DNA of 64,000 bases from Trichosphaerium sp. ATCC 40318 (Eukaryota > Protista > Tubulinea), in contig JALMLS010000022.1 in the NCBI GenBank assembly GCA_038496445.1, forward strand, positions 1 to 64,000. Reading direction: 5' to 3'. The notes beneath the pieces were generated by a model, which saw only the letters and a program-made list of their open reading frames with translations, did no database searches and was not told the DNA's origin. Shown here one piece after another: positions 52 through 60,998 of the stretch. Each line of letters begins with the position of its first letter. The stretch's first letter is position 1. The translations under genes and the position numbers were made by a program.

Positions 52-1555
52 ATGTTAGTTAAAATTATTTTATCTTGGTTTTAGGTTGTATTGTATTCTC
101 ATCTGAGTTTCCTCCTGACTGCTCAAAGTTATCTTGTACGTACAAAAACCATTATTTCTAAACTGTTTTTTTGCTTATTGTTAATATCCAAGATGGAAGT
201 AACACCTATGACCTTTCTGGTTTGACTGTACGGTTGCTGTAGTATTATATTGTGTTGTGTTTAACTTTATTTCAAGGCTCTTGGTATTCAGGAACAACAA
301 GGATCGCATACCACCTCCTATTACTATCGCTATTTTGTTTGTGGCGAACAAGGCCAGACTTGTGGAAATGTTGCTGAAGATTGTGGCGTTTGTAGTGCAT
401 GGGAAGGCCGTTGGAATGAAAACCCCTATACATACTGTGAGGGAATGTACACTGAAAGTAAAACAGAGATAACTGAGTACAGAAACGGAGATGATCTTGG
501 CATTGCTATTGAATATGGATGTACGTGATCTACTCCCTTATTGTCTTACAATTATAGACGCTGATGGAGGCTCAGTATCAAACATGCTCCTCATTTGTGA
601 TCTCAAATACAGTGGTACGCTAATATCTGAAACCGAGTTTGCTTGGTGTAATTGACGGTGTTTGTAGGATTTGAGAAAGCAGATGTTGATAATACTGCAA
701 TTTATAATCCCGTTGTACGCAAAAATAGCACTAGTAACCATAGGCGCACATTTTTATTGTTTCTTTAGATTACAGTTCGTACAAAAGACGCTTGTCCTCA
801 TTCTCAAACCCCATTTCCACCAGATTGCTCCAATATTGTCTGTACGTACAAAACATCAAAACAATGAAATGTAGCTAAGTTTGAATCAACAGTTGCAAAT
901 CGTAAGTATGATCTATCCAATCTTCAATCTCTCGGTGTACAAGAGACAAGAGGTTCCTCAACATCATATTATTATGTCTATAGATGGTTTGTATGTGGTG
1001 ATCAAGCTCAAACATGTGGAACAGCGAGTACATTTGCTTTCTTTTTTTTTCTTAAAGAGGCTGTTGGTATTCACAAGCCATTTAGCGGATTCATGTGCTG
1101 TTTGCTCAGCTTTTGAAGGACGCTGGCATGACCCAAGTTTTACAGCCTGCGAGGGAAAATACAGTGAATCTTCTGTTAAGATCTCAGAGCACACATCATC
1201 AGGAGTAAAGTTCGATTTTGCTGGTGAGTTTTCAAAATATTGATACTATTGACTTTTCTTCAGATGGAGACATGGGTAGTGTTTCAGAGATTATTCTTGC
1301 TTGTGATCCCCGATACTCTGGTATAAATACTCATTAAACTTTTATTCGTTTACCAAGAGTGTAGGATTAGAACAAGTGTTTGTTGACAACACAGACGTAA
1401 ATAGACCAAGTGTACTTCCTTTTTTTTTTTTGGAAAAGTAATTTTGGCATACCATTTATTATTATGAATAGATTTTTGTTCGTACAAGAGATGCATGTCC
1501 ACAAACTATTGAAGAACAAGAAACAAAGAATGTTGTTTATAGTGCTAATGAATAA
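52..1555 (+). CDS. Secreted protein with two tandem mannose-6-phosphate-receptor-homology (MRH)-like domains; multi-exon; apparent 1-nt frameshift in the signal peptide
   Basis: Spliced exons give two homologous Cys-rich units: YDLSGL..YYYRYFVCG..C..C.VCSAWEGRW..CEG..LICD..TVRTKDACP and YDLSNL..YRWFVCG..CAVCSAFEGRW..CEG..LACD..VRTRDACP. The YDLS start, ICD and T..AC end are typical of MRH/CI-MPR repeats. Stop TAA at about 1553-1555. The ATG at 52 is in frame only if one G, present in the paralogous copy at about 4690-4731, is restored. Confidence 0.7.
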
Positions 1556-2738
1556 AATTCACTAAAATCCCCAATATACTGGTTTATCACGTTAGCTTAG
1601 TATAGCAGTTTTAGTTTATTTCGTTACAGACTGGATAGGTATTGATTGATGTACCACTTGGAGATAACATCTGACATCCATATCAAACACATCCTGTTAG
1701 TAGAAAGCGAATTAACAACAAGATTATCCTCGGGCATCAATACAAGACAGTGCGTTTGAAAACACTACCGTCAAGAGTGGCTAGTATGAGAATGGCCAGT
1801 TGAAGATTCAACGTACTGAAATTAATGTTAAAGAACACCCAGCACTAGTCATTGGTTTTGGTGAAATGTTTGCTACGTTAAGTGTGGTAACGGGGGGCAG
1901 CCAGCTTAGTTTTTGTCTTTTTTGGCAAGGAGCGGTCAAAAATGTCAGTATTACAGTCTTGGAGCGTAAGGCGGTGTGTGGACGCTAGGAGAAGCTACTA
2001 AAGCATCTAACATGCGAACAACGATTTTTGATGGTTTCCGGATAGCAAAGATTTAAAACATCTTTTTAGGCTCGGTTGCGCGTCGTTTGATCCCTTCTTT
2101 TAATATGACTTTCTCTATATTTATGTGCTTATACCGTGATAAATATAGCTGGTAGTTCAGCTTGCTAAGAACATTAGAGCTCTCGGTTTTTTTCGGTTTT
2201 TTTTCTTTTTTTTTTCTCTAATTGTTTTCGGTCCAAGTTTAACTCACGTGATATTTATTGATTGTGTATTCCGTAACATGAAGACAACTAAAAACTTGAT
2301 AGTCGTACAGCCTAAAGGAAATAATCACGTGCATGTGGAATTTCTACGCTGCCAATTTAAGACAGTACGTTTTCTGGATTTGCTTGTTTCGGCTACTAAA
2401 CTAGGTGTTTTTAACAGGTGTCGGAACATACAAAGAATGACACTGGATTAGATAATGATATTGATTTAGATTATACCTCAGCATGAAATAATAAAAACTA
2501 TTTGTAACAAAATCATCACCTATTCTAACGATGTATGTTCAAAACAAACACAGTAGCCAAAGTCGTAAATCAATTGAAAAAAAAACACTAAGTCTATTTG
2601 AAAAGAAAATTCCTTGTCTTGAATCTGTAATGTCCTTCAGAAGTTCTACAACTCTCATGACTCTACCACCAGCCATCGATTCAATATTGCTAAAAAGTAG
2701 CCAATTTCATGACTGTAGACGAAAGATAAACAAAATGT

Positions 2739-5365: not shown

Positions 5366-5779
5366 TAGTTGTAAAGTCATGCAACGCAAAAAAGAAAGAT
5401 AACTTAACCCCATAGACGTTTGCACTACAGACTCTATTCATTGGTATAGCCCATTTTGTGCCACATATTATAAACTACTACGCCAAAAGCGTAGTAACAC
5501 ACTCACTGTCTGAATGTGGTGAAACAGATTTGCCAACAAATTGTAGCTTAATCTGCCAGCCTTCTCCTTAGTCTTAATATCTGTATTTACAGGCAAAAAA
5601 TCCATCAATATCGCCCTAGTACCCAGCTAATTATTTTTGTATAGAAACAAAGGTGCAAATGGTCAGCAGCACTGGTGTAGTGCAAATAGCAAACAAAATT
5701 AAAACAAACCAACCTTTCAACCGAAAAAAGAAGTAATCTTTTAGTAACACGTTTTGCGAATCAAATCAATGCTGATTTG

Positions 5780-5980
5780 GTTTCCACGTGTGTATATAGC
5801 TATCGCAAGCCTTTGCGAGAGTTTTGAAATGTGCATTATCAGTGAAGTGAAGCAACAATACCGAAAACGGAAGTTATCATTTAGTAGCACGTTTTTTGCA
5901 ACAAAACATCGCCGATAAGGTTTCCACGTGTGTAAATAGCTACCACAAGCCTTTGGGAGAGTTTTGAAATGTGCATTATC
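5780..5980. repeat. Direct repeat of about 60 bp with 140-bp period, each copy containing CACGTG
   Basis: gtttccacgtgtgta(t/a)atagcta(tcg/cca)caagcctttg(c/g)gagagttttgaaatgtgcattatc at 5780-5840 and 5920-5980. Confidence 0.9.
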
Positions 5981-8879
5981 CATATTTGAGTAATTACAAT
6001 AGAAATTTCAGTGAAGTGCAGTCTGTATCCCACAATTTATTTCTGAGAGGTTTTTATGGGTATAAAAAGAAACGAAAATATTTCGGTAATTGTAGTAGTT
6101 GCAGTGTGTGCACCACGCGTGGGGCTTCCTAGCCATTTGGTCGAAAAAATTTAAGGGAGTCCTCCGTCTAGCTTAGTGGGTGTATGCATTGCGAGGTGGA
6201 ATTGACAAAGTTCCATCTTAATCCGACGTAGTGTGAAAGCTTGAATCGTTACATTAGCCAGCATGTCCTCGTAAGTAGCACGTAATTAACTTAGGAACTC
6301 GGTCTGGGCCAAGAAAATTATAAGGTCCGATATAGAGGTGAGTTCTGCCGTTAGGGAAAAGCTCTATATAAACTTTGAATAGGCGCTGCATAGCAGCATG
6401 ATCGTTCTTTTTGTTGTTAGCCCAATTTTGGAATTGTATCTGTTTTAAGGTTCGTTTCTACCGAAAAAGTCATTGAACACGGTTGTGCATGCTATGCACA
6501 TTAACGCTTGTAAAGGTGGATACAGTTACACTCAAATCCAAAAATGGATCAGCTCTAAAACTGGAGTTCTTTTACTGTACAGGGTTAACAATTATATGTT
6601 TGATTCTGTGATTAGAATATACATTATTACTTTAACACCTATCTTAACACTGAAAAGTGTTTGATATCGTATACTTGATAAGAATTGCTGGCAGAGATAA
6701 AATCAGAGACGTTGGTAAAGTTAAGCTACAGTTTTTTATTATTACATCTATCACGAAATTTCCATTACATTATTTTACACTTATTCTATAGTATTGCCCT
6801 ATTTATTTGTATTGCGCTTCCTCAAAGGAGTTCATACAAGAAAGAACAGGTTATGTTTTTTTTGTTGTTTTTTGATTTGTATTTCTTGCTTGCTAGTTGG
6901 TGTAATTGGTTCTCATGGCGCTAGCGGCTTCATTTCGTTACATTCTATAAGCGTAAATGTGTATGTTGGACCCATTTAGTAACCATAGCACCCATAACAA
7001 CGCTACAAAACACTTAAATTTTTTGACATAAAAAAACCAAAGAGAGCATTTTTTGCTACAGTTCTGGTTCAAATCAAATCAACTTGTTTTCCCAAGAAAC
7101 TCCTTACATTCTATGTCGCGTTTGTCCCAAAAAAACCGAAGATGATTTCCACTGAAACACGTGATTTTTTTTTTCTCAAAAGTTTGCTTACTACACAACT
7201 GATTGCCATCTATATTTGTCAGGCTTCGGTTCTTTCCCTTGCTCATCAAAATAAGCATTATAAGTAACAAATCGTAAAATACCAGCCTATTTATGGAATG
7301 TTTAGAAAGACAACTAAGAAAGTTCGTTTAAGGTACCAGTAGAAGGCCAATCAGAAATCTTCTACGTGTAAATTTGGTTATAGTAAGTAGCATTGGTAAA
7401 ACAAAACCAATGTATCCAACAATATGTATTCTCTTAACGAACTCAACATCTAAAACATTTTGTTTGTAAAAATGGCATTTTTAAAAATACAAAATATTTT
7501 GTTCTTTTGCTTACCTTCAAGCTCCTTTGAGTCCTGAGTTTTATAATACAGTATGGGCGTAAGATCTTTGCGTACTCTAAATAAAGTACAAAAAAATAAT
7601 TTTAATAAAGGTGCAGTCACGTGTAGGAAAGGTTTTCCTAACACGTTACGATAAAAAAAATCTTGTTATTTTTCTTACCCAAAATTTGTCTTGTTTCCGC
7701 CCTTACGCCATCTTTCTACTCTCTCTGCCCTCTCTCTTTGTTTTGTACTATGTTCATATTCGAAATAACGCTGTTTGATGCGTTTGTGTGAAAGTATTGG
7801 TAGTGGCTTATTAAAGTGCTAGAATGTCATTAGATTATGATAATCACGCGTAACTACGTACAACACGGTATAATCTGAGCCACAATGCTCGCGAATTTAC
7901 TACTCTACACCTGTTGTACGTTATTAAGTACTAGACATACGTGTCATATGAGTCTTACCATTCTGTAGATACCAAAGAAGCATTTAGTAGCTGGTGACCG
8001 TTCAAACATTCAAAAACTTCAAACCAACAGTCATACGGTAACTCTTGAATTACTAATGTGTTAGTTGACTCCATGGTGCAATGGCGTAGCGTATATTCGA
8101 TTTTGACGGCCAAAACCTTGCACAAGCTGAACCTGTGTGAGGATGCCTCTTTTCTTTCAATGGGTAGGGAGTTTAACTGTAGTCGATTACAGTGTATGCA
8201 GCGTCAAGTTATGTAAGCAAGGTAACAACCTGACACTACGAGAAAAGTTGTTTTAAAAATCACGTGCGTGAATAAATAAAACAGTTCGTAACAATTACTT
8301 TATGTTATGAATCACATTTTGAGGCTTGTTTATTAGTTTTACCATCTGGTAATTCAGTCAACATGACTGAACAAATGTCTGTCTAGGCCTGACATAAACT
8401 TGCAATTTCTTGCAAAAAGTCACTTTTTTACAAAAACTGGAATGACAGGGACAATACCGTCATTAGTTTGTGCAAACAACTTGCTAAGTTTTTAGGGATT
8501 TTGATTTTTTTTGTTACATTATTTACACTAAATTGTACACTAATTATCACGTGCGTGGAGTTAAATTTCTTTGATAATAATACTCAAAAGGAAACCTTCG
8601 TATGCCCCAAGATGTGTAAGCAAACATTCCTTTCCAATCAGAGCTACTACTCGCTTCTGTTCTCAAAAGAAGAGTTTTGAACGGTTGAGTACTTTTTCCA
8701 GAGTCTCCACTTTGCTTGTACTTAAGCAAATCCGCAAACCCTTATACGTCATAAGTAAACAATACCACAAGGTTAAATAAAACAATACTAATTGAAATAT
8801 CAACGAGCTACGTGTTAAGAATTTTTTGCTTCAGTGAAAACCGCACCCAGTTAGGAGCAAAAAAATGTTGTTTTCTATT

Positions 8880-43472: not shown

Positions 43473-46308
43473 ATGCACGCTTTAAATAAACTTGCACGAA
43501 AGGTGGACGTCAAAGTTTTAGATGACTGGTACAAACCTTCCTCTGTCAGTTTACTACGAGCTCGGCGTAAACAACGCCTGAAAAGGTATTCTTAACGCCG
43601 TTGATTAATTGGTAATTTACCATCGCGCATCAACACTCTAATTAGTCATTTCTTACCATTTTGGTGTAGTTTTGGAGCGCTGTATGCCTTTTTACGCAAA
43701 GTTTATCCAAAACACGATTGGAAGCCGTGGTTATTCGGGTACATGCCAAACAATAACAACGCGGAGGTTCTAGGCGTTTATCCTTTTTTTTGAACCGCCT
43801 GACTTCAAATTCGCTTTATTTGTGCTCACTAGGGTATAGACGCGCACCAGATGGTTTCTACAATAGCAAAAGGAATCAAAGACGTACTTTTGATGCCATG
43901 GGAGAGGCAATTGGTGTAAAACACATGGATGATTGGCACAGTGTAATTATTGAAGATTTTAAAGAAGCAGGCAGTTTAACGGTTATCAACACCTAGTACG
44001 TTTTTGGCAGTATTTTGCACCTGTACATAATTCAGCTTGTGTTTGGGATGCATCAATAATCGCATCACAGTCACGTGAGTGCTATAAAAAAGAAAAAGAC
44101 TATCACGTGACTGTGGAACAGATAATTTTCTTTTTGTTGTTTTTGTTTGGAATTAAATCGTTTGCTTAGCTATCAGGGATCTGCAATCAAGGCACTGCAA
44201 GGAATATATCCTGAGTATACCTTCAAGCCATGGATGTTCGCGTAAGTAGTAGGAAGACCAAAAGGGTTGTAGGCGGTATGTGAATTCACTAATAACTTAC
44301 TAGTCAAGCATATACCCATTATTGGGCTAATAAGGATAATCAGCTTGATTTTATGGAAAGCATGGGTTCTATAATGGGTTTTAAGACCGTAGAAGATTGG
44401 CATAAGGTAAAAACTAGAGATTTGAAACAGCACGGAGGCATTATGTTGATAGATATGTACGTCAAATTAACAAAAATCATTTTGCAAAGAAAGAAGTCAT
44501 CAATTCGTTAATACTAATTTATTTCAGATATGGTTCGGTGACAAATGCACTAGACGCCTTGTATCCAAAGAAAGAGGCTACCGGATGGAAATCTGCGGCG
44601 TTTGCGTAATGCTAATTGGTATTGGTGTTGTTTTCTTATTTTTTTCTTGCGGTAGAGCGAAATTCAAACAAGCCTCTATGAACATGCACTCACATGCTTT
44701 TGATGTACTTTCTAAAAAACTTAATTATAAGACTACCTCTGAATGGGCTGGAGTTGATTTTGATACATTTAAATATCATGCAGGGAAGACTCTGTTGAAT
44801 CGGTACGATTTTTTTTAATTGATTTTACAAGAATGGTTTTACCATCACCTTAACTCATTAATAATTTGTTCAACGTTGACTACATTACTTTTATATCATT
44901 TGACACATAATGTACATTTACTTTAACAATGTAAAAATGAAGGGTTGCTTTTATTATGACATTTTTAGCTTTTTTTTAATCACTTTGCTCAATGTTTTTG
45001 TTTAGATACAGTGGGTCTACTTTTTGTGTTCTTTCGAACGTTCTACCTAATTATGATTGGGAAGCGGTAGCACCACTATTTAGGTACATAATGAGATGAA
45101 TTACATATAGCAAAATGGCTGTAGAAGTTTTTTTTCGAAGCTTGCTTGAAATCTTTCACTAGTGATAACTCATTTATTTTCTTCAAAGGTCTTACGGCAA
45201 ACATTCCTACGGATATTGGAATAAACAAAAGAACCGTGTTCATTTTATAAAGAGCGTTGCTAATTCATTACAAGTTCGTGAAGCCAGTGATTGGTAAGAG
45301 AGAATCAATCGGGAATTATTATCTAATTTAGTTTGAATAGGTATCGCGTTTCTATTCACAGATTTGTTAATGCAGGCGGTTCGGGAATGCTATGGAATTT
45401 TCCTGATATACTAAGTCATGCATATCCATCTGTTAACTGGGAGTGGAAGAATTTTGGAAAGAGCTTTAAGAAAGCACAACAGCGGTACTTTTTCTCATAA
45501 TTTACCAAAATAATTATTATACGATTTGACCGTTTCTCTTGCATAGTGTAATGATAGATATGTTACGGATAATATTTCCAAAGTATCAAATTATTGAAGA
45601 ACATGTTTTACAGAATCATGAATCTACAGATGCAGCTGTAAGGTATGGAATACCTCGAAACGTTGTTCAACTTTATCTTTTTTTTTTGTTACAAGGATTT
45701 TTAACTGTACCTACCTGACAAACAATTTAGTGTTGATGTGTTCATCCCTGATCTAGATTTAGTATTCGAGTACCAAGGTACATACAATATTTGCTTATTT
45801 ATTGCTTAGTAGAGTATTAAAATACAATCCAACTGAAATTGTTTGGGTTACAAAAATTTGTTGACAATTTTTTCTTTAGGTGAGCATCATTACCATGATA
45901 TTGTATCTTTCTCCATAACAACGGCTGTACATAAAAACCGTGATGCTGAAAAAGCGCAGTTATGTAAAAATCAAGGCACGTGACATCTGATTGGATAATA
46001 AATGGCTTACCGATTAAACTAGGCTTAACTCTTATACCTGTTCCTTATTGGTGGCGTGGGGATACAGAAAGCCTTAAAGCCACAATATTGTATTATAAAC
46101 CAGACATAAATATCACCGTAAAACCTGGCGTACGATTACCACAGATGCCTAGGCTGCTAGGTCAAGTAGGACGAGGTAAGCGAAAACGTGTTCCAAAAAA
46201 ATATGTTGCAAATTTTTTGTTTCAACTGTTGATTTTTTCTTTTTAGATGCTACTAAACAAGCAACAATTATGTCACCAAATAACTACCTTGTATGCAGTA
46301 CAGGGTAG
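43473..46308 (+). CDS. Trp-rich helical-repeat protein (5 repeats) with C-terminal Vsr/DUF559/RAP-like nuclease fold; no ligase domain; about 15 exons; start uncertain
   Basis: Manual splice gives repeats (Y/F)W..K.NQ..F.......LG.K..EDW..V.......GG..L...YGS...AL..LYP...WKPW.F. These are followed by KKAQQR..IIEEH..VDVFIPDLDLVFEYQGEHHY..RDAEKAQLCKNQGLTLIPVPYWWRGDTESL, ending IMSPNNYLVCSTG*. Confidence 0.85.
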
Positions 46309-57219: not shown

Positions 57220-60200
57220 TTAATGAACATGTTCATTATCTGATTGTTCCATAACAGTCTGCCATGTCATTTCATGACGTCTTTGATAGTAGAAAGGATG
57301 TAAAGGCTTACCACGAGAAGTAAAACCCTAAATAGAACAAAATGAACAAATGCAATTAAAAAAACGAAAAAAAAGATCCAATTCAATGTTACCTCGTGTT
57401 TGATTGTCAATACAGCACCATAAGGTGGTGGATTTTCAACATCATGCCTTGAGCATTTTATAAACACTTCTATACTATTTGTACTAAAGTGCAGAGATTA
57501 ATGAGATGACAATTAAAAAAAAACTCTTCATTCATTTTGATTCATAGTATAATTGTTCGTTCCAGCATTACGATGGCAATGAACCAAAATATAACAGTGT
57601 AAATGAAGTAAAAGGCATACGGGTTTGTTACGTACAGTTGGCATAACAAGAAACTTCCAGTATCATGTGGTCGTATCATCATAACTTCCATATCATAAAA
57701 AGGCTAGAGTTAAAAATTAGCAAGTTAGCTAAAACCAAACAAGAGTTTCAAAGAAACGTTTGTAACTTATTTTCTAATATACTATTTGGCATAAAGATTA
57801 AAAGGTACGGCTGCCCGTGATAAGCACGTAAATGTCCATAAGAAAGCAGGGCATAAAATATTATGATGTCGTGCAAAAAAATGAAACAAAAATGATTTTT
57901 GCTATCACAAATCGTTTCTTTGCTTACCTTGTACTTGACAATACAACTCTGTCTTCCCGGGATATATAGTCCTTCAGGGTCTCTAAGAACTAATCCTTCA
58001 CCTAATTGTGTATAAGCTGTTAAGTAGATGAAAATCAAGGTTTAGTCACGGTACCACCACGTGATAACACTTTGTTCAATAATTCTTTAAGATGATCTTT
58101 CCCATTACACTTGGTATGCTCAACAACATCTATTATCGTAGATGAAAAATCCAATAATGATTTTTTGAGTTTAGCATAACGTTCTATATCAAGGATTAAA
58201 AGGTTTCATAGTCAATACAATAACGTACTTGTAAATGATAAGTTTTCTGATACAATATCAAAAACTTTAAACCTTGCACCTTTACCATTATCAGTCACTA
58301 ACCTCCATCATAAGAAAAGTCATTCGTACCTTTCCAACGAGGTGTTGTTCTATACAATGAGCTTGTGAGTAAATCACGCGTATTGTGACCCATCCTAAGC
58401 ATTAACTGTTAAAAACAATCCAGAAGCACAAAAACAAAAACATGTACCATAATTCTCCATCCAAAACCAGATGAGCAGGCAGTTGCTGTTTAACAGAAGA
58501 TGGACATGGTATGATTTTACCTTGTCTGGAATAGAAGCTAGAACCATTCCACAAGGCCCGAATACCATCATACTTCTCAGAAACATACCTATTAAGAAAA
58601 AATTAAGAAAAAAAACTCGAGTTGATGTACAAGCGTACCATCCTTTATAATCTTCATTTTCGTCCATGTTGCCGAGTAACATTACTTTATTACTCTCTGA
58701 AGCTGCTATAATAATAATAAATACGTGGCTATAGTACTCAAATGTTTGATCAGAAAGACGAACATATTTGTAGTACAGATTTCGGAGGTTTTAATAAAGG
58801 CGAAACACCCTTAACAGGTTTCAAGTTGATATGAGGTGCATGATGAGCAATGGTGGATTGCAAAGACTCTGTATCACCTTTCCACCAATAAGGCACTGGT
58901 ATCACTGTAATACCTGTAAACGGATTTAAGTATGGCGAATGACATTCCGTTTAATTGGTTGGATTGCTTTCAATACCTTGTTCTTCACATGTATGAAGTT
59001 TCTCCAAATCACGTCTTTGTGATATTGATGCTGGTCCGAATTTAGAAGGGTAGTCATTATAATGTTGTTCTCCTTGGTATTCAAGAGCAATATTAAGACT
59101 TGGTAAGAAGATATCAAGTGTCATCCAAATAAAAGTAGAATCTCTTCTCAATCCTATATTATACTCTTCAACGATTTCTACACCAGGTAGTACTTTCTTT
59201 GTACACTGAAGTAGCTCTCTAATGTGTTTTAATAACTCATACAAGAAGTTAAAGCGCGTACAGTTGCGTAGATCTCTTATTTGGACTTGCCATTGTCGAA
59301 GAATCCCAATCATGTGCTGGATAAACAGAGTGAAGTATTTGAGGCCAATACCGTACCAAACCACCTCCACCATGATCTAAAAGTTGCTGTCGTGATACGC
59401 GATACCTATATAATATACTTAGAATTTAAATCACGGAATTTGAAAGCACTACCAAGACGATATATCATTGACTTTCATTTTATCTTTTAATTCTGATAAA
59501 AACGCCTCAACATTTTTAGGCGATGTCCAAAAATTCTGTGGCCTCTTTGACGTTGGTCTAGGCATACAGTCAATAACAAATAGAATACTAAGTAACCCCG
59601 TACAAGCTACGCTCAAACTTCCAGTTGTGATTGGGGTATAGTGCTTGAAGTGTCCTCATTAGAGATGATCGATAACTATAAAAAAAAAATAAGATGATCA
59701 ACAACTCAGGTCATTAACCAAAATATAGAAGACGTACTAACGTGTAACACCACCAAGTACTCCACTTAACCTCTTAAAATCAGCTTTGATCCAATCACCC
59801 AAAGTTTTAATATCATTATCTTCAGCAGCATCATCAAGCATTAATCTTTGATTTTCTTCATCAAACCAAAAATGACTAACAACACGCCTTAAAACAAAGT
59901 TAATAATAGTGAGACACACTCATTATAACCATACTTGAACTTCCATGGTTTCCAGTTATATCGAGGGTATGTATCTGAAAGAGCACGAGCCACTGAACCG
60001 GTATACCTTTGGGTAAAACGTAAGAACCCAAAAATAGAACTAATCTAAAATGGATTCATTCTTACTTTGACAAAATGCCTCCACCACCTCCTCTTGCTAC
60101 ATCTTCTGTACGCATACTATACCACTCATGTAATGCTTTAACATTAATATTCTTAGAAACTTGTTCAAATAGTTCACGTTGAGAACGAAGATGCAAATCA

Positions 60201-60998
60201 TCAAAGTTTGCGTTTGGAAAAACTGCCACAAGCAGTTTATGCATAGAGCCTTCATACCTAACAAATATTACCCTGTAACCAAAGAAACATCTTGTCACTC
60301 CCACATGATTTGACACGTGATTCCATGACGCTTCGAGCGTACACTGGAGGTCAGTACGTACTTGCTAAGTAAACTTAGAGCTCCTTTTTCAATGAGTTCT
60401 TCAACGCGCTTATCTAGCCAATCATCCATCGTTTTAACGCCTAAGAACATACCAATCTCATCTACACGCAACATTTGATTGTTCAGGTCGTTTAGGTAGC
60501 CCATAGGAGCGCCTCTAGGAGTTTTTATGGAATGGTTCCAAATCAAAACAGCTAAACTTACGCAAAATGCCAGGGGACCCACTCAAACTGCGGGTAGAGT
60601 GCCTTCAGAGCTTTTGATAAGGAATCGTTGTACCTGATAGGTATTAGAAATAAAAATGGTTTTTATCCATCCAAGACGATCTTGCAGTGCGTAGGGAAGG
60701 CTGTAAGCGTACTTGCTGAGTAATCCACGCGCTGAAGCTTTTCGTAGCTGTAAATGTGACACTTGGTACCAATCATCGAGTGACTAATGGCAAAGGTTTG
60801 AAATTGAAGCGGTTTTGGTGCCAAATATCGAAGAGCGTGTACTTGGACATTTAGCGTACGAGCAACAATGTTTAGACGCGCTCGTTGATCATTTATATCT
60901 TCCCAGTGCTTTTGTAGGTTTTTTTGCTTTGGCGGTTTTTTTTTCGTAACTTTTGCTTGGCTTCTTGCGCGGATCAATTTAGAAACAACAACTGACAT
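57220..60998 (-). CDS. Trp-rich helical repeats (5) + Vsr/DUF559/RAP-like nuclease fold + ATP-dependent DNA ligase (adenylation and OB domains) fusion; about 21 exons
   Basis: Manual splicing gives one continuous frame. It runs through repeats (DDWY, DDWL, HEWY, GDWI, SSWY), then IVEEY..LDIFLPSLNIALEYQGEQHY..RDLEK..GITVIPVPYWW. The ligase part follows: GWYVSEKYDGIRALWNG..YSRQG, LVLDGELW, FKVFDI, GGEGLVLRDP, VKYKP, PPPYGAVLTIKHEGFTSRGKPLHPFY..RR. Confidence 0.9.

Follow-up and report, generated by a model that had tools for sequence, protein, structure and literature searches.

Analysis of the first 64,000 nucleotides of contig JALMLS010000022.1 from the protist Trichosphaerium sp. ATCC 40318 (hereafter the window) revealed a gene at 57220..60998 on the minus strand that very probably joins, in one polypeptide, an array of five 74-amino-acid (aa) helical repeats, a Vsr-like nuclease domain and a predicted ATP-dependent DNA ligase of the Lig E type. 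The locus is an intact, weakly expressed nuclear protist gene, and it belongs to a large family built on a DUF4046-like five-helix repeat array with a C-terminal Vsr/EDxHD-type endonuclease domain. Each domain comes from a known superfamily; the combination, the repeat fold, which is without a solved structure, and the large family lack a description that we could find, our literature searches having returned none for the family, the 74-aa repeat or the repeat-nuclease-ligase fusion and no paper mentioning DUF4046. We infer a recognise-cut-ligate activity for the protein, and we put at roughly even the chance that it is a DNA-directed incise-and-seal enzyme, probably mitochondrial. An earlier note, made from the letters of this DNA alone, had proposed an organisation of this kind: its architecture and folds stand, its analogy of the repeats to PPR and TALE proteins does not, and a DNA role is better supported than its analogy to RNA processing.

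Gene structure and the fusion in relatives

Exons were placed by hand from a six-frame translation, in which the coding pieces are split by short introns; only GT-AG introns were allowed, and the exons were checked against the repeat pattern and homologues. The resulting coding sequence comprises 21 exons and 779 aa, with the ATG at 60998 and the stop at 57220-57222. From high to low coordinates on the minus strand, exons 1-7 lie at 60998-60843, 60783-60713, 60633-60562, 60514-60362, 60257-60066, 60006-59935 and 59887-59771, exons 8-14 at 59675-59604, 59557-59453, 59405-59262, 59218-58977, 58913-58764, 58705-58639 and 58588-58448, and exons 15-21 at 58394-58330, 58279-58229, 58183-58055, 58001-57928, 57703-57636, 57483-57393 and 57327-57220. 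All 20 introns are GT-AG and 43-224 nt long, and the canonically spliced exons contain zero in-frame stops, which bears out the single open frame that the earlier note had obtained by joining GT-AG exons. Colinear tblastn matches of four relatives (P0070, P0142, P0139 and P0022) agree with the exon model. The acceptor of exon 18 was set at 58001, giving ...LSRGGEGLVLR, which matches ...NKGGEGIVL of P0142; an acceptor at 58016 was rejected because it adds a 5-aa insertion without counterpart in homologues. An automatic longest-ORF (open reading frame) splice chain produced a 989-aa nonsense model and was dropped for the manual, homology-checked exons. Judging from exon lengths, introns 2-10, all of phase 2, interrupt the repeat array at two recurring positions of the repeat.

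Relatives provide the main evidence that the three parts form one protein. A search of the 80-aa translation of nuclease exon 11 against 1.84 billion representatives retrieved 655 relatives at E ≤ 1e-3, and several of the 150 listed run on into the ligase. Compared with the model by BLASTP, P0139 (731 aa) aligns over model positions 117-782 with its own 25-727 at 25.9% identity (E 7.5e-73), P0142 (588 aa) over 312-777 with 79-584 at 30.5% (E 1.9e-73), P0070 (564 aa) over 365-781 with 22-439 at 34.3% (E 4.8e-72), and P0022 (859 aa) over 42-705 with 29-659 at 25.0% (E 2.5e-42). The same domain order is found in at least four full-length proteins, each at most 35% identical to the window protein, and two partial proteins, P0115 and P0093, extend to the ligase start. 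A word-indexed homology search with P0139 residues 315-731 yielded 3 proteins and added nothing to this picture. P0139 is a single uninterrupted 2196-nt ORF on the 171-kb contig L001, and therefore its fusion requires no splicing assumption, while P0022 is a single Trinity transcript from the amoebozoan Cavostelium apophysatum. In the window the gap between nuclease and ligase is a 58-nt intron, and the acidic/proline linker (aa 501-523; 58683..58809 (-)) has the length seen in P0070. Because of these independent colinear fusions, the intronless P0139, the P0022 transcript, the intron-sized gap and the P0070-like linker, we take the fusion as real. The single polypeptide read by the earlier note is thus upheld with high probability, as is the amoebozoan affinity it had suggested, the relatives being amoebozoan and other protist proteins.

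RNA evidence for the gene is shallow. Just two RNA runs contain about 5% of the words sampled from it, and the RNA contigs, at depth 2-3, give partial coverage of exons 8-11 and of exon 21. They confirm introns 59558-59603, 59406-59452 and 57328-57392 only, the support for the last being a loose contig end that runs on into exon 20. Because these shallow contigs are spliced, the gene is transcribed and spliced at a low level. As a check on one continuous mRNA, which the earlier note had envisaged, they go part of the way: three introns are confirmed, and no contig runs from repeats to ligase. The two runs also differ at one intron, 59406-59452, which is kept in a contig of run X1 and spliced out in run X2. 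Position 57277 reads G for A in both runs and 59424 reads C for A in X1; these mismatches could be strain differences or editing.

Nuclease and ligase domains

The nuclease domain (aa 376-500; 58810..59290 (-)), identified from conserved columns and a modelled fold, is a Vsr/EDxHD/DUF559/RAP-like PD-(D/E)XK nuclease. Its E..D..EYQGEQH motif lies in exon 11 (59218-58977), and the conserved residues comprise E402, D420, E431, G434, H437, D455, K458 and a PYWW strand. In an alignment of 41 modules (A1), the D, E, G, H and D columns are invariant and the Q, E, P, Y, K, P and W columns nearly so. E402, D420, E431, H437 and D455 are invariant or nearly so across these modules and match the published Vsr set in kind and order, and these five presumed catalytic positions are retained in the window gene and the other fusions. 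In Vsr numbering, the set shared by Vsr and I-Bth0305I consists of Glu25, Asp51, His69 and Asp97; one further acidic residue is conserved as well (PMC3239194).

Structure prediction places the domain in the same fold. The AlphaFold2 model on A1, made for relative P0001, which is 51% identical to window exon 11, reached a pLDDT (predicted local distance difference test) of 89.8 and shows the order alpha-beta-beta-beta-alpha-beta-alpha. Foldseek ranked Vsr (1vsr) first, with probability 1.00 and a weak E of 0.015, and the catalytic domain of I-Bth0305I second, with probability 0.99 and a weak E of 0.03; VIA-align gave Z scores of 10.1 for I-Bth0305I, 9.8 for 3hrl and 9.7 for Vsr-DNA, the span over 3r3p, 3hrl, 1cw0 and 1vsr being 9.3-10.1. 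In AFDB, the nearest neighbours are the family's own MMETSP members, some of them auto-named 'RAP domain-containing' in UniProt, then bacterial DUF559 proteins at template-modelling (TM) scores of 0.7-0.84, and after these zinc-ribbon, treble-clef and NUMOD1 proteins. In the ESM Atlas, the domain falls near phage DUF723/DUF4379/CapR proteins, a giant-virus cluster, DUF2726 and DUF559. The earlier note's reading of the motif as a restriction-endonuclease-like fold of the Vsr/DUF559/RAP type therefore agrees with the model, both structure searches and the conserved residues.

Sequence profiles return far less. Pfam found almost nothing on single window exons and left the nuclease exon without any match. 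Among the 41 modules, 15 show a weak DUF2726 match and none DUF559 or Vsr; the only full-length relative above the DUF2726 cut-off is P0022, at 28.6 bits. Pfam RAP (PF08373) appears in two of the 41, far below threshold (best E 0.079). A profile of the nuclease alignment had no match among PDB sequences, so the link to Vsr is one of fold comparison only. A 2012 census of PD-(D/E)XK proteins listed the VSR/DUF559/DUF2726 group as prokaryotic only (PMC3424549). When we scanned prokaryotic genomes, modules 26-43% identical to the nuclease turned up at 21 loci, in ORFs without 74-aa repeats. Half of the ten prokaryotic loci scanned for other domains (L003, L005, L009, L012 and L016) carry DUF4379 treble-clef fingers, three of them with CapR as well; DUF4379 thus accompanies the nuclease in bacteria and, in kinetoplastids, a mitochondrial-type Lig E/K ligase.

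The ligase consists of a Lig E-type nucleotidyltransferase (aa 524-691; 57928..58682 (-)) carrying motifs I, III, IIIa, IV and V, and a Lig E-type OB domain (aa 692-779; 57223..57703 (-)), placed by alignment to P0142, P0139 and P0070 and containing a motif VI-like GKPLHPF. Motif I, EKYDG (K543), lies at 58564-58578, exactly where the earlier note had put it, and the further motifs LDGELW (III), FKVFD (IIIa), EGLVLR (IV) and IVKYK (V) are intact. Among Lig E structures, exon 14 alone matches 4d05 (E 1.5e-6) and 8u6x (E 6e-5), and the ligase half of P0142 has 6gdr, 8u6x and 4d05 as its best PDB matches at about E 1e-25. With PF01068, single window exons reach E 0.17 and 0.033, below the cut-off; P0142 passes it (49.1 vs 26.2 bits) and stays below the cut-off of PF14743 (20.3 vs 28 bits). 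A feature search set the fusion beside phage and bacterial Lig E-like clusters and a kinetoplastid ligase cluster, the latter with DUF4379. By its sequence, the domain is a motif-complete Lig E-type ATP-dependent DNA ligase, and the minimal ligase type of bacteria, phages and kinetoplasts recognised from the first can be named as Lig E/Lig K.

A tblastn search with the model found no second ligase elsewhere in the window. In P0139, motif I reads EKRNG, with the lysine retained and Asp replaced by Asn. Two more genes lie beside P0139 on contig L001, one for a further Lig E-like ligase and one for an XPG/FEN1-type nuclease (5388-6293 (-), 1418-2642 (-)); that further ligase lies on the opposite strand to P0139 and is 25-28% identical to the P0139 and P0142 ligases.

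Repeat array, family and N-terminus

The five 74-aa helical repeats (aa 25-375; 59291..60926 (-)) were found with a 74-position hidden Markov model (HMM) at E 4.5e-11 to 4.6e-22. They occupy aa 25-99, 101-173, 172-238, 239-300 and 305-375, which confirms the five copies of the pattern W..NQR..DW..GG..LL.KY.GS..L..YP...W that had been noticed by eye. Repeat 4 is 12 aa shorter: the sole frame-keeping GT-AG splice (donor 59771) drops its GG..LL segment, and no canonical splice at the exon 7 donor can retain that piece. Just 3' of this donor, the in-frame stretch 59741-59770 (-) resembles the missing segment (RLSGVLGGVT). Repeat 4 is thus either a degenerate or relic form of a full repeat, or reflects an unseen splice or an assembly problem. 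The HMM, iterated from the window's five repeats and run on the 150 listed relatives of the nuclease exon, detected 578 repeats, from 1 to 14 per protein. The conserved positions are an aromatic/hydrophobic core together with N-Q-R, DW, GG and YP; the remaining positions are variable, spread across the unit, and lysine-rich in the family consensus. The window array is mildly basic (isoelectric point (pI) 9.05; 48 K/R vs 43 D/E).

Three consecutive homologous repeats (A2) were modelled by AlphaFold2 at a pLDDT of 95.4 and a predicted TM score of 0.77, with about five helices per unit. Solved structures gave no significant match, TPR, PPR and other solenoids included (Foldseek best E 0.27), and a VIA search of 48,161 chains, independent of Foldseek, reached Z 4.0 at best, its top matches being small HTH, SAM or Slx4-CCD-like bundles. 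Predicted structures were more informative. Unnamed AFDB proteins, which judging by accession series come from a giant-virus metagenome, Planctomycetes and dictyostelids, match at E 6e-13 to 1e-5; Bacillus DUF4046 proteins match at E 6e-5 and 1.6e-4, and weaker matches are named restriction endonuclease, LAGLIDADG and DUF559. The repeats also match DUF4046 clusters of Discosea and Bacillota in the ESM Atlas (TM 0.55-0.64), and the BFVD viral library gave zero matches. Pfam DUF4046 (PF13255) itself is reached only below threshold: of 58 repeat triplets, five show a match, the best at E 0.017 and 15.6 bits where 22.8 are required.

On the modelled fold, the repeats are an array of DUF4046-like domains and not a PPR/TALE/OPR solenoid; helical hairpins of the PPR, TALE or OPR type are ruled out by a 74-aa five-helix fold that matches no solved solenoid. 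The suggestion that the repeats read nucleic acid as PPR and TALE repeats do is not supported: the fold differs, the conserved positions are core residues, the variable ones are scattered, and there is no sign of a code of one repeat per base. We regard the repeat domain as a candidate nucleic-acid-binding module; in bacteria and archaea, matches, if weak, place it alongside DUF559, LAGLIDADG and restriction nucleases as well. In the 523-aa protein A0A3Q9FTI3, repeats at 160-389 (weak, E 1.3e-2) precede a nuclease at 398-512 (E 9.7e-5), the same order as in the window; if the weak repeat match holds, the repeat-nuclease architecture exists in bacteria too. To our knowledge, DUF4046 has no known function.

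The protist family on this plan is large and expanded, with clustered paralogues and no fewer than 655 sequence clusters. The window itself holds a paralogue at 43482-46192 (+) with repeats and an intact-looking nuclease and no ligase. On the nuclease-domain tree, the ligase label changes eight times, at least two of these changes being forced by well-supported branches; as most forks are poorly resolved, the ligase fusion may have arisen once or more often. Four relatives (P0002, P0003, P0022 and P0052) have two nuclease modules per chain, each after its own repeats, an arrangement that fits a double-strand cutter. A Cys-containing tail (C..C ... FC....C) is shared by P0022 (743-792, after the ligase) and P0144 (330-390, after the nuclease) at BLASTP E 7e-5. 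It may be a zinc finger; no Pfam family matched either tail, and a PARP-type finger was not confirmed.

At the N-terminus, the 24 aa before the repeats (60927..60998 (-)) are presequence-like, with 8 K/R, no D/E and a pI of 12. The KKKPPK within them is the basic start of the repeat 1 consensus, which leaves a true extension of only about 18 residues. Many complete family proteins, P0022 and P0142 among them, have a 10-40-aa extension before the repeats that lacks acidic residues and is rich in R, K, S and L. The N-terminus is, in composition, compatible with mitochondrial import, as the earlier note had supposed.

Proposed role, alternatives and known systems

In the incise-and-seal reading, the basic repeat array would tether the protein to a DNA site or structure, and the Vsr-like domain would incise one strand to leave 3'-OH and 5'-phosphate ends, the ends that Vsr cleavage leaves. 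Other enzymes would then remove or resynthesise DNA before the attached Lig E domain sealed the nick, so that the enzymes which begin and complete a short-patch repair, recombination or replication-intermediate pathway would both be kept on the same DNA. Lig E enzymes are known as DNA nick-sealing ligases, and we know of no DNA-binding domain in Lig E alone. A DNA substrate is favoured because every partner is a DNA enzyme or a DNA-nuclease-associated module, namely Lig E, the Vsr/EDxHD active site, and prokaryotic relatives of the repeats and nuclease with DUF559, LAGLIDADG, restriction-endonuclease, NUMOD and treble-clef domains. Physical coupling of nuclease and ligase would give a cut-and-seal system open to direct test, and the family may point to the mitochondrial DNA ligase of amoebozoan-like protist lineages.

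Several points weigh against this proposal. A fusion of nickase and ligase would gain nothing unless some other process intervened between nicking and sealing. Among the top VIA-align matches of the nuclease model are RAP domains that act on RNA (Toxoplasma mitoribosome, Z 10.2; FASTKD4, Z 9.3), and given these fold matches the substrate may be RNA instead of DNA. The ligase-fused members are scattered in the poorly resolved nuclease-domain tree; because of this scatter and the ligase-less paralogue in the window, the ligase looks like an exchangeable modular add-on and not an obligate partner. The RNA data are too thin for one repeats-to-ligase mRNA, no read spanning the boundary in this genome, and the basic N-terminus might just as well direct the protein to the nucleus.

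It is possible, if on the unlikely side, that the protein is a ligase with a borrowed DNA-binding arm: a replicative or repair ligase, mitochondrial or nuclear, for which the repeat-nuclease part is a targeting module that makes no programmed cut. Gain and loss of the ligase tail among family members would suit such a history, and the minimal two-domain Lig E has acquired targeting domains in other eukaryotes, as a C-terminal PBZ in the rotifer AvLigE, itself a eukaryotic acquisition of Lig E (PMC10665377), and as DUF4379 in the kinetoplastid cluster; the five invariant and presumably catalytic positions retained in the fusions, however, argue for selection on catalysis and not on binding alone. 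We consider it unlikely that the protein is an organellar RNA factor, the amoebozoan counterpart of helical-repeat RAP proteins (FASTK, OPR, HPR), in which the repeats would bind mitochondrial transcripts, the RAP-like domain would process RNA and the ligase would join RNA or RNA-templated ends. The Toxoplasma RAP as top structural match, the UniProt names of MMETSP members, the presequence-like N-termini and the expansion of the family with its varying repeat number all fit, and a published survey failed to detect RAP in Amoebozoa (PMC8190603), a gap that the family could fill; it may then replace RAP/PPR-type organellar factors in amoebozoan-like protists. Yet Pfam RAP is far sub-threshold in the modules, the repeats are not 34-40-aa hairpins, Lig E enzymes are known to seal DNA nicks, and both modules have their prokaryotic and viral relatives in DNA endonuclease architectures. 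The likeness in fold to RAP proteins that prompted the earlier note's RNA analogy thus remains, and the partner domains favour a DNA role over it.

A more ambitious form of the incise-and-seal reading makes the 74-aa domains a modular sequence-reading array, and the protein a single-chain enzyme that would find, nick and reseal specific sites in mitochondrial DNA and so edit, recombine or resolve them, with paralogues tuned to different sites. We hold this to be improbable; if true, it would add a third protein-coded mode of nucleic-acid recognition beside PPR and TALE and a scaffold for targeted nicking and ligation. Decidedly improbable, in our estimate, is a domesticated or selfish family, homing-endonuclease-like or antiviral, whose repeats would target foreign or allelic DNA and whose ligase, in some members, would limit self-damage. 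Phage, giant-virus and bacterial modular endonucleases do contain relatives of the nuclease and repeats, and doubled repeat-nuclease units and clustered, expanded paralogues accord with it, but the window gene is nuclear, has 20 spliceosomal introns and lies outside any intron, intein or evident mobile element, and presequence-like N-termini suit organelle import better than defence. An annotation artefact, with two adjacent genes or a decaying pseudogene under a forced exon model, is very improbable indeed. RNA confirms neither the linker junction between exons 12 and 13 nor several others, and the splice needed in repeat 4 costs the repeat one of its segments; set against this are the absence of in-frame stops with canonical introns, the intron-sized gap, the colinear fusion in other species, once as an intronless ORF and once as a transcript, and spliced RNA contigs at both the repeat end and the ligase/OB end.

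Comparison with known systems places each part of the fusion. The DUF4046 domain (PF13255) of Bacillota and its unnamed AFDB relatives share the repeat fold (E 6e-13 to 6e-5), although the repeats of the window family stay sub-threshold to PF13255 by sequence. FASTK, OPR-RAP, HPR-RAP and mitoribosomal RAP proteins resemble the family in that helical repeats at the N-terminus precede a Vsr-like alpha/beta domain at the C-terminus, and the helical-repeat RAP proteins are likewise expanded and probably organelle-targeted; they differ in that their repeats are 34-40-aa hairpin solenoids, in contrast to the five-helix 74-aa units, and the window protein carries a fused DNA ligase and does not reach Pfam RAP. 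Nucleases of the Vsr/DUF559/EDxHD group (I-Bth0305I and Hef type) have the same fold (Z 9.7-10.1) and a conserved acidic and His set of the same kinds and order, and the EDxHD homing endonucleases have the same bipartite plan, with modular DNA binding at the N-terminus and the nuclease at the C-terminus. Unlike Vsr, the window nuclease has no zinc site and no Pfam Vsr/DUF559 match; unlike the EDxHD homing endonucleases, it is preceded by a 74-aa repeat array in place of NUMOD or HTH, and its gene is nuclear and intron-rich, not intron- or intein-borne.

The window ligase shares the nucleotidyltransferase and OB_2 core with Lig E (4d05, 6gdr, 8u6x), rotifer AvLigE and kinetoplastid ligase k; Lig E also has in common with it motif I, SEKxDGxRAxW, and provides its best PDB sequence matches. 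Unlike bacterial Lig E, it has no signal peptide and follows about 520 aa of repeats and nuclease, and the ligase part alone is interrupted by eight spliceosomal introns. AvLigE and ligase k are, like the window protein, eukaryotic copies with an added nucleic-acid-related extension, which consists of PBZ or DUF4379 fingers in those enzymes, whereas in the window protein it is N-terminal and made of repeats and nuclease.

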